Assembly: GCF_018350175.1 (NCBI RefSeq)
Contig: NC_058381.1
Coordinates: 60,512,001-60,576,000, forward strand
Origin: Felis catus
Taxonomy: Eukaryota
Direction of reading: 5' to 3'
DNA: 64,000 bases
Below the pieces are notes generated by a model that saw nothing but the letters and a program-made list of their open reading frames with translations, did not search any database and had not been told where the DNA came from. A program made the position numbers and the translations under genes. Below, in pieces: positions 27,667 through 37,200 of this stretch; positions within the stretch are counted from its first letter, which is position 1; every line of letters begins with the position of its first letter.

Positions 27667-28270
27667 CGCGTCCCCCGACTCCACCCGGCACCCGTAGCCC
27701 GCGCAAGTCCCGCCCTCCACCCCGCTTTCATTGGCTAGGCCTCACGTCCAAGTTCTTCATTGGTTCGCGGCGCTCACGACCTGGTGCAGCCCAATCGGCG
27801 CACAGCCTCTGGGGCGAGCCGAAAAGGCCGCCTCCTCGCCGCTCGCGGCCCGGCCGGCGCCGCGCGCGTGCGCGCGCCCGGGGAAAAGGCGGAAGCGGAA
27901 GTCGGGGGCGCGCCGGTTCGCAGCGGGGAGCGCAGCGGCGTCGGGTCGGGGTCCTGGGGCGCCATGGGGCGCGGCAGCGGCACCTTCGAGCGTCTCCTAG
28001 GTAACGTGTCCCCAGCCCCCCGCGGCTCGGCCCGCGTCCTGGGAGCTGAGCCGGGAGGCGGCCGCCGAGCCCCCGGGGTGGGTGGGCGCGCCCGCGCTTT
28101 GGGGACCGGGCAGTCCCGGGTGCTGGGCGCGGGCTCCGACTCGAGTAGGTGAGGGTCCGCGGGGGAGACCGGGCCCGCGCCCGCGGCGACTGCGCTCGGG
28201 GCTCTGCTCCTGGGCCGGGAGCGGGCCGGTCCCGGGGAAACAAGCATCTGACTGAGCGGGCCACAAGTCC
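27330..28270. promoter_or_regulatory. Bidirectional CpG-island promoter ARL16/HGS: three CCAAT boxes about 30 bp apart (27730, 27759, 27791) and tandem ETS site CGGAAGCGGAAGT (27890-27902)
   Basis: The ATGs are about 300 bp apart, head to head; motifs read directly. Confidence 0.85.
27448..27605 (-). other. ARL16: U12-type (minor spliceosome) intron of ARL16, 158 nt, CT...AC termini
   Basis: 5' end CTATCCTTCC, branch site TCCTTGAC with the A 10 nt from the 3' end, no polypyrimidine tract. Removing it gives an in-frame alignment to the recalled orthologue. Confidence 0.85.
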
Positions 28271-34200: not shown

Positions 34201-37200
34201 TGGGCGAGGCTGCGTCCCCCAGGGGACAAGAATGCCGTGGGCTTGGGGCCGCGGGAGGCTCGGGCGTGTGTTTCCCGGGCCTGCTGCGCCCTTAGCTGCA
34301 CCTCACGGCCGACAGCCTGTGCGCTCCAGCCCCCCGGCTGCAGCCTCCCTTCCTGTTGAGGCACAGATGGCAATGGTGCAGGCTGGGGCCGGGGGCGGGG
34401 GGGGGGGTCTCAGCTGACGCCCCGGATCTACTGTCCCGCAAGTACTCATCCCCGAGCACAACTCACGCGTGGGTTTTTTTAATTGGACTTCTTCTCCCAC
34501 AACAGTGGCTGCAGTCGGGAGCCTGGAAGCGTGCTGCTTCCCGAGGGTCTTTGTGGCCACTCAGGCCTGCCTTCTGCCCGCTCTTGGCCCAGCTCCCACC
34601 CGGGGAGGCCCGGCCGGGGGCACTCAGCAGCAGGCGGAGGTGGGCAGGGTGGGCGCGAGAGGGCAGCGGCCCGGCGGCGGGCCGCGCCCTGACCCGCCCC
34701 GTTCACAGCACCACTGCCGGGCGTGCGGCCAGATCTTCTGCGGCAAGTGCTCCTCTAAGTCCTCCACCATCCCCAAGTTCGGCATCGAGAAGGAGGTGCG
34801 CGTGTGCGAGCCCTGCTACGAGCAGCTGAACAAGTGAGTCCCCGCCGGCTGCCCCGAGGGCCTCGTGTGCTCCGGGTCCTGGCTGTCCAGGAGGGGGGCC
34901 GGCACGCACCCAGGCTCTCAGAGCTGCCAGCCGGGTGCTAGGGTTTGTGTGCTTCTTAACTTTTTAGCTTGGACGTAAAACTTAGGGAAAAGACGCAGGG
35001 GCGGTAAGCAGACGCCATGTGGTGTGGCCTCCTCCCGGCTCCCTCAGTGTTGAGGCCGCCACGTTGGCATAATTGCACGGTCCCCCTTCCCCACCCACCT
35101 GCGTGTTCACGCACACCGTGTCCGTTCTGGATCTCTGCGAGCGAGCCGCGGGTAGCCCCCCGCCCCCCTGTACCCCAAGCCCCGTGTGTTTCCCTAGAAG
35201 TGCGCGCTCTCCTGGGAGCACAGCACAGTTGTCACACCGGGCCACGTGACATCAGCACGGGGCCAACACCTACTTTGCGCTCCCATTCTGGTTCCACTGC
35301 GTCCCTGTCAGGTCCATCCAGGTCCGTGGCACATGACAGGTGGCCGTCCCACCTCCTCGGCTGCCTTAGAGTCTGGTTCTGTGCTCCTGGTTCCGTCCCG
35401 GGAGTGAGGCTTCGTCCCTCTCGGTGTGACCCGTCTGGAGGCCCGTGCTGTCCATCCTCCGGCGTCTGCGATGGTGTCTGCAGGCCGCTCCCCTGAAAAC
35501 TTCCTTTCCCACGTGTGAACCTCATTTTCAGGAGAGGGGGCTGGGGCTTAGGCCTGTGACTTGCCCAGGGTCCCACATCCCAGAGGCGACAGCTGGTTTG
35601 AGGGACCGGCTTTTCTCTAGAGCATGGCCTGTGGCACTTCTGTCGTCATTCTGTGGGGATGCTGGGGGCTGGGGTGAGGTGCTCGGCCACCCAACGTTCT
35701 CTCGCCTCCAGGAAAGCAGAAGGAAAGGCGTCGTCCACAGCGGAGCTGCCCCCAGAGTACCTGACCAGCCCCCTGTCCCAGCAGTCCCAGGTACTCCTGG
35801 CCCCAGACCCCGCTCACCGGCCTGTCTGTCCCCAGCTGCCCCCAGAGTACCTGACCGGCCCCCTGTCCCAGCAGTCCCAGGTACTCCTGGCCCCGGGCCC
35901 CGCTCACCGGCCTGTCTGTCCCCAGCTGCCCCCCAAGCGGGACGAGACGGCCCTGCAAGAGGAGGAGGAGTTGCAGCTGGCCCTGGCCCTGTCTCAGTCA
36001 GAGGCTGAGGAGAAGGAGAGGATGGTGAGCCGAGGGAGGCTCCCCCGGTTCGGGGGCACCGGGGGAGAACGTCCCTAGACGTTTGGGGAGGGCCGAGGAG
36101 TGTGGAGGCTTAGTCCGCCTGCGCCCTGACGCTTCCCTGCTCCTGCAGAGACAGAAGTCTGCCTACGCCGCTGCCACATACCCCAAAGCAGAACCCGCGC
36201 CCGTGGCCTCGTCGGCGCCCCCTGCCAGCAGCCTGTACTCCTCGCCAGTGGTGAGCCCGTCCCAGGCCGGGCCGCGGTTCTGTGCCGGGGTGGGGGGGGA
36301 GGCAGACTGGAGGGCTGCCCCAGAAAAGACAGCGCCTGATGGGGTGGGTGAAGGTCGAGGTCCGGGCTGGCCCTCCCTGGCCTTCCTGCCCCTGGCCGGG
36401 GTCCCCTGTGGGGGAGAGGACATGGGAAGGCTGGAGGCATCCCCCCCCCCCCGCCCCCGCCCCGAGCAAGAGGAGATGGGTGAACCCTGGGGTCAAGAGG
36501 GGTCTGCCTTTTTCTGGCTTTAGTTTCCTCTGTAAATAGGGGGTGGGTGGCAGGTGGAGCGGAAGATTTAGGAAGTCATCGTGGGCTCTGTGGGGCTGCA
36601 CGAGCAGGGGGGCCAGCTGGCCAAGGGCCTAAGGAGACCCTGCACCTGCCATTGGGCCGTTACAGTGTGGTTTCTGGGAAGTGGCGTGGGGGTACCACAC
36701 CCAGAGCCCCGGGGGCCCGTCAGACAGACTGGCCGGTGCTCAGTGCCCACTGTCACGGCCGTGGCATCCCAGCATCCTGAGCGATGGCCTGGGAGGAGCT
36801 GGGTGAGTGTTCGAGCCCGTGGGTCACTGCTGATCTGGCCTGTGTCTCCCTAGACCTCGTCGGCGCCTCTGGCTGAGGACATCGACCCTGAGGTGAGGGG
36901 GCGAGGGTGCCTCTGCGCGTGGTGCTTTCCCCTGCAGCTCCCTGGCCCTCGGGAGTGACCTCTGTTGCCCGTGCAGCTTGCCCGGTACCTCAACCGGAAC
37001 TACTGGGAGAAGAAGCAGGAGGAGTCCCGGAAGAGCCCCACGCCGTCTGCCCCCGCGCCCCTGACGGAGCCGGCTGCCCCGCCCGCGGAGGGGCACACAG
37101 TCCCTGCCAGTGCACTGGAGGTGAGCTGCTCTCGGCACTCCAGGCCCACGGTCCTGGGGGGGCGGCGCCTGGGATAGGCCGGACGCCCCTCTCACCCTCT

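Follow-up and report, generated by a model that had tools for sequence, protein, structure and literature searches.

The window, a 64,000-nt stretch of the Felis catus genome, contains HGS on its plus strand, between about 27.96 and 41.72 kb, as placed by mapping the Felis catus HGS protein model XP_003997318.4 (P0226) onto it. The translations of exons 9–11 are identical to this model, and the translation of exon 10 matches the UIM peptide of the solved Hrs structure at 21 of 21 residues (PDB ID: 2d3g, chain P). This mapping bears out the exon numbering of an initial annotation of the same DNA, which had placed a repeat at the boundary between exon 9 and intron 9, adjoining the UIM exon. A retrocopy of this part of HGS was looked for in the cat's own genome (2.43 Gb, 71 contigs) and none was found; the stretch occurs there once, at the locus itself. 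In Neofelis nebulosa (L011:1-202), Leopardus (L013:1-2) and dog (L014:1-68), an Arf-family gene (PF00025) lies head-to-head with HGS on the minus strand, and it is presumably also found upstream of position 27964 in the window. The features of the exon 9 to exon 10 region, in window coordinates, are as follows.

35712-35790, plus strand: HGS exon 9, 79 nt, ending in LPPEYLTSPLSQQSQ, assigned by sequence, translation and match to P0226
35746-35835, plus strand: repeat unit 1, comprising the final 45 nt of HGS exon 9 and, after these, a 45-nt GT-AG segment
35791-35796, plus strand: donor 1, GTACTC after CAG, identical to donor 2 and the probable working 5' splice site
35791-35925, plus strand: putative functional intron 9, 135 nt, first donor to last acceptor
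35813-35817, plus strand: branch-site-like CTCAC of unit 1, matching the YTNAY branch-site consensus (PMC4463651); its A at 35816 lies 25 nt downstream of donor 1, with 19 nt to acceptor 1
35836-35925, plus strand: repeat unit 2, which consists of an internal pseudo-exon copy, with Gly for Ser at 35857, and a 45-nt GT-AG segment
35881-35886, plus strand: donor 2, an identical copy of donor 1, probably unused
35903-35907, plus strand: branch-site-like CTCAC of unit 2; its A at 35906 lies 115 nt downstream of donor 1 and 25 nt downstream of donor 2, with 19 nt to the final acceptor
35924-35933, plus strand: third copy of the microhomology AGCTGCCCCC, at the acceptor/exon 10 boundary
35926-36024, plus strand: HGS exon 10, encoding the double-sided UIM (21/21 identity to 2d3g_P)

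The repeat is detected by Tandem Repeats Finder as a 90-nt period at 35744-35933 (2.1 copies, 97% matches, 0 indels, score 359). The 45-nt exon part of each unit codes for LPPEYLT(S/G)PLSQQSQ, with Ser in unit 1 and Gly in unit 2, and the 45-nt GT-AG segment of unit 2 would end at the working acceptor. A 10-nt microhomology, AGCTGCCCCC, is present at 35744, 35834 and 35924 and opens both units as well as exon 10. Both the anatomy of the duplication (45 nt of exon 9 plus 45 nt of GT-AG sequence, twice) and the microhomology had been described in the initial annotation, and the Tandem Repeats Finder result and a direct reading of the sequence show that description to be correct. The two units differ at only three positions (35767/35857, 35805/35895 and 35807/35897), each with an A in unit 1 and a G in unit 2; the first of these is the Ser to Gly change in the exon part. 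With head-to-tail units that fall within roughly 10-100 bp (a 90-nt period, present 2.1 times in the window and 5.1 times in Neofelis), the array has the structure of a minisatellite, or VNTR. The reading frame runs across the repeat without a stop for 104 codons (35713-36024). This open frame had been pointed out previously and is real, but it says little about coding, since two non-coding frames are open across the same GC-rich stretch (35445-36008 on the plus strand and 35617-35958 on the minus strand; G+C of about 67%). The open frame is thus compositional, and it was rejected as evidence of coding. Mechanical ORF calls on such GC-rich DNA also explain the read-through "proteins" of the HGS locus in the protein collection.

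Contigs were found by a word search with the read-through ORF, and the identifier of a full-length macaque HGS led to felid protein models and then to their genomic loci; later protein searches covered residues from 222 onward, and positions 34762-34846 were masked or left out in alignment and mapping. Two MEGAHIT metagenome contigs, L003 and L004, carry the two-unit ORF and match the window at 100% identity, over 1697 and 1085 nt, respectively. Past 36301, the window has no counterpart of the tail of L003 (1698-2492); the junction is at a G run and the tail closes with a dispersed repeat that is present several times in the window, which has the look of a chimeric join that leaves the first 1697 nt unaffected. 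Five other contigs, four from the same metagenome series as L003 and L004 (L002, L005, L007 and L008) and one Logan contig (L006), have a single unit, in which exon 9 is followed by a 45-nt intron. The 45-nt, single-unit form of the intron that the initial annotation had raised thus exists, in these Felis contigs. Every one of the five has G at 35575, where the window has A, all four that reach 36178 differ from the window there, and other differences are found in the flanks as well. The intron type of L005 and L008, with G at site 2 and A at site 3, is present in neither unit of the window. One further difference lies in exon 10: the Gln that precedes the acidic run of the UIM (ETALQEEEE, window 35958), which is the second residue of the crystallised UIM peptide, is His in L008 and Leu in Neofelis (L011:8711-8713).

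That five contigs from related samples carry a single unit could be taken to mean that the true genome has one unit and that the duplication is an artefact of assembly. This explanation is barely credible: the two-unit form recurs without change in two independent MEGAHIT contigs, two or more units are present in three other felid assemblies, and the single-unit contigs have different flank alleles, two of them in combination with an intron type that collapse of the window allele cannot yield. For the same reasons, the different flank alleles and the distinct intron type, it is unlikely that the single-unit contigs are collapsed versions of a two-unit allele, an argument that is weaker for the short k=31 contig L006. 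Over 651 flanking nt, the single-unit contigs differ from the window at 1-4 positions, relative to 14 in Prionailurus, 18 in Leopardus and 20 in Neofelis, which places them inside Felis. The difference between one and two units is probably a polymorphism within one species. Because two or more units are the shared felid state, the single-unit forms look like secondary contractions, which probably arose in more than one event.

The number of units varies among felids. One unit is present in the five Felis-like contigs, two in the window (90 and 90 nt), in Prionailurus (L012) and in Leopardus (L013), and five in Neofelis nebulosa (L011; 90, 90, 81, 90 and 90 nt). Dog (L014) has one copy, with a 73-nt intron. 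These data provide the comparison of orthologous intron lengths that had been proposed in the initial annotation. The intron part of the felid unit aligns with the dog intron with a single 29-nt gap, the felid unit being without those 29 nt, and the dog counterpart of the AGCTGCCCCC repeat is shorter. Intron lengths of 66-87 nt are implied by the read-through ORFs of about 20 other species. In the four felids, every unit length, whether 90 or 81 nt, preserves the open frame. The 81-nt unit 3 of Neofelis (L011:8420-8500) is without CAGTCCCAG, a 9-nt slippage between two TCCCAG repeats at the exon end, and these are the same 9 nt that are extra in a cat protein model, P0273, described below. 

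The exon part of unit 1 is unchanged in the four felid lineages and in the five single-unit contigs. In contrast, 8 of 8 internal units, among them every one in Prionailurus, Leopardus and Neofelis, have G in place of A at unit position 22, which replaces Ser by Gly, and the internal exon copies additionally carry three lineage-specific substitutions (C20G in Leopardus and Neofelis, G18T in Leopardus and A38C in Prionailurus) and the 9-nt deletion. This free drift, relative to the frozen first copy, fits an intronic status of the internal exon copies.

The presence of the Ser-to-Gly marker in every internal unit also indicates that the array predates the split of the sampled felid lineages. 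This split is usually dated near 11 million years. Judged from these sequences, the duplication is older than the felid radiation and is common to the cat family. The outgroups further allow the three differences between the window units to be polarised. The change at the exon site is A-to-G in copy 2, whereas those at 35805 and 35807 are G-to-A changes in copy 1 that are found only in the Felis lineage. Thus, of the three A-to-G changes in copy 2 that had been claimed, the one in the exon holds and the two in the intron occurred in the opposite direction and in the other copy. Likewise, the two AG dinucleotides thought to have been lost from copy 2 were not: none was removed from its intron part, and copy 1 gained one. 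The 97% similarity of the two copies is the point in favour of a recent, private duplication caught in the act, which the initial annotation had presented as a possible snapshot of intron or exon birth. This scenario is very improbable, as the arrays of Prionailurus, Leopardus and Neofelis have the same boundaries and the same Ser-to-Gly marker as that of Felis, and the differences between units, which number 2-4, agree with an old duplication of an age near 11 million years.

The sequence of events may be outlined as follows. A carnivore intron of about 73 nt would have lost 29 nt, and slippage or unequal exchange would then, before the felids radiated, have duplicated the 90-nt segment between two AGCTGCCCCC repeats. 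As both units share the 45-nt form of the intron, the 29-nt deletion would, with dog as the non-felid carnivore in the comparison, have occurred before or together with the duplication. The array would later have expanded to five units in Neofelis and contracted to one unit on some Felis haplotypes.

Both units have letter-identical CAG/GTACTC donors and acceptors that consist of a pyrimidine tract plus CAG; the duplicated segment therefore carries donor and acceptor signals, as in an intron extended by tandem duplication. The canonical Hrs junction, SQQSQ/LPPKRDE, can be obtained from only one pairing of these sites, 35791 to 35925. This junction is present in 16 of 17 felid HGS protein models, from nine species (Felis catus, Neofelis, Panthera uncia, P. 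onca, P. leo, Leopardus, Prionailurus, Acinonyx and Lynx), which are predicted proteins that lean partly on homology and are for that reason weak evidence on real splicing. The spacing at the junction is canonical in 195 of 197 scorable full-length HGS orthologues. None of the annotated felid HGS protein models has an insert of 15, 30 or 45 amino acids, the alternative outcomes that had been anticipated in the initial annotation. One cat model, P0273 (UniRef A0ABI7ZLB4), reads LSQQSQQSQLPPKRDE, with an extra QSQ (9 nt) at the junction (window 35782-35790). To produce this QSQ from the window, either a 9-nt micro-exon from unit 2 together with a 45-nt intron or a 9-nt slippage allele would be required; it is also possible that the repeat misled the annotation and that the extra residues are an artefact.

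Together, the frozen exon part of unit 1, the drifting internal copies and the canonical models suggest that splicing joins donor 1 at 35791 to the final acceptor at 35925, with the internal copy serving as intronic filler. The 135-nt composite intron with an internal exon copy that had been put forward previously is consistent with these data, including the junction in 16 felid protein models. Mechanistically, only the exon part of the first unit in an array would be coding, and removal of the composite intron between these two sites would give SQQSQ/LPPKRDE. Between neighbouring donors and acceptors there are only 45 nt, of which 25 nt separate the donor from the putative branch A, well below the usual mammalian range. 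Due to this short distance, the internal copy would be skipped and would drift as intron. The 180-nt stretch is thus probably a two-unit allele of a 90-nt HGS minisatellite specific to felids, and this old array is probably spliced from its first donor to its last acceptor. Overall, the duplication first seen in the initial annotation is confirmed and its interpretation is partly supported, whereas the claims of a young event, of the direction of the changes and, among the annotated felid models, of protein inserts were not borne out.

A different use of the internal copy has also been considered. The Gly-bearing 45 nt or the intron could be retained to give Hrs isoforms with 15-45 additional residues in the FYVE-UIM linker, and the array could have been kept for these isoforms or as a decoy that tunes retention. 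All splice signals have been duplicated intact, the frame is open at every unit length in four felids, and decoy exons within introns are documented to promote intron retention (Parra et al. 2018, PMC6097662). Like the felid internal copy, such decoys are unproductive, exon-like elements with intact splice sites inside an intron (PMC6097662). However, the described decoys act mainly in introns of more than 1 kb (PMC7373989) and are tied to observed retention, whereas the felid intron has 135 nt and its retention would be hypothetical. In addition, no felid model contains such an insert, amino-acid-changing substitutions pile up in the internal copies with none in unit 1, and the open frame is compositional. 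Use of the internal copy is therefore distinctly unlikely.

Whether the array matters for splicing at all depends on how a 45-nt intron is handled. Human GT-AG introns of less than about 65 nt are uncommon (Shimada et al. 2015, PMC4463651), the A complex spans 79-125 nt of RNA, and validated human introns with lengths of 43-56 nt are few, most of them G-rich (PMC4463651). The GT-AG intron of each unit and of the single-unit contigs, at 45 nt, has the ends and the length of this ultra-short class (<=65 nt) and lies within the range of the validated 43-, 49- and 56-nt human introns (PMC4463651). Most validated ultra-short introns are G-rich with a G-rich enhancer; in contrast, the 45 nt of the felid intron are approximately half C, with one GGG and a putative branch site of canonical appearance 19 nt from the acceptor. 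HGS is absent from the list of human ultra-short introns (PMC4463651), and a literature search found no paper that links HGS with ultra-short introns.

These considerations bear on the possibility that the array is a neutral minisatellite without influence on splicing, with a 45-nt intron that is efficiently spliced alone and in no need of rescue. Single-unit haplotypes seem common (5 of 7 Felis-like contigs), and human introns of 43-56 nt can be spliced (PMC4463651). However, efficient splicing at 45 nt should yield the Gly copy as an exon in the two-unit allele, which no model shows, and the intron part of the unit, C-rich with one G triplet, does not resemble the G-rich introns that have been validated. 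A purely neutral array is therefore considered unlikely. As a hypothesis, a role of the duplication as a rescue of a too-short intron, as raised in the initial annotation, is plausible and compatible with the history outlined above. One-unit haplotypes appear to persist in Felis, which weakens the claim that 45 nt is simply too short and argues that the 45-nt intron is not lethal: it would either be spliced, or its in-frame retention of 15 residues would be tolerated. As a tentative and still doubtful extension of the old-array reading, the locus may represent a natural allelic series at an essential ESCRT-0 gene (45 and 135 nt, and 396 nt in Neofelis). The duplication would have been fixed early because the 29-nt deletion had over-shortened intron 9, and the one-unit Felis alleles would either splice the C-rich 45 nt or yield Hrs with 15 additional residues by the UIM.

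The felid array resembles known systems in part. Alternatively spliced introns have been reported to arise from tandem arrays with splice sites in their units (Zhuo et al. 2007 PNAS, pmid 17210920, as cited in PMC3488318). Those arrays reportedly share with the felid array a donor and an acceptor in each unit and splicing across units that removes whole repeats in frame, which in felids is the probable rather than the observed outcome. The units of Zhuo et al. 2007 reportedly consist of purely exonic sequence, whereas the felid unit combines a pre-existing intron with the end of an exon; unlike those arrays, which create new introns, the felid array would extend an old one through its presumed splicing. 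A second precedent is the one-step creation of introns by segmental tandem duplication (Hellsten et al. 2011, PMC3265369). In that model a donor upstream and an acceptor downstream are provided by the duplication, and the original mRNA is restored through use of the outer pair, as would presumably also apply in felids. In contrast, the model of Hellsten et al. 2011 starts from a duplicated exonic AGGT and ends in a brand-new intron, whereas in felids an existing intron would be tripled from 45 to 135 nt. A formerly exonic origin, as in the AGGT model, does not apply here, as the intron is already found at the same position in dog and many other species. The felid array is thus distinguished from the known cases in that its unit holds a whole pre-existing mini-intron, which the array lengthens.

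Should splicing prove canonical throughout, the array would be a harmless curiosity in the history of felid genomes. The cat model with the extra QSQ serves as a warning for annotation, since a tandem repeat over an exon-intron boundary can give odd gene models. Minimal mammalian intron length and the pairing of identical splice sites are usually studied with artificial minigenes. In felids, an essential gene presents the same donor, branch site and acceptor with spacings that range over 45, 135 and up to 396 nt; mis-spliced HGS products all remain in frame, and the one- and two-unit forms possibly segregate within one species. The felid HGS array would be valuable above all as a natural series on which minimal intron length could be tested.
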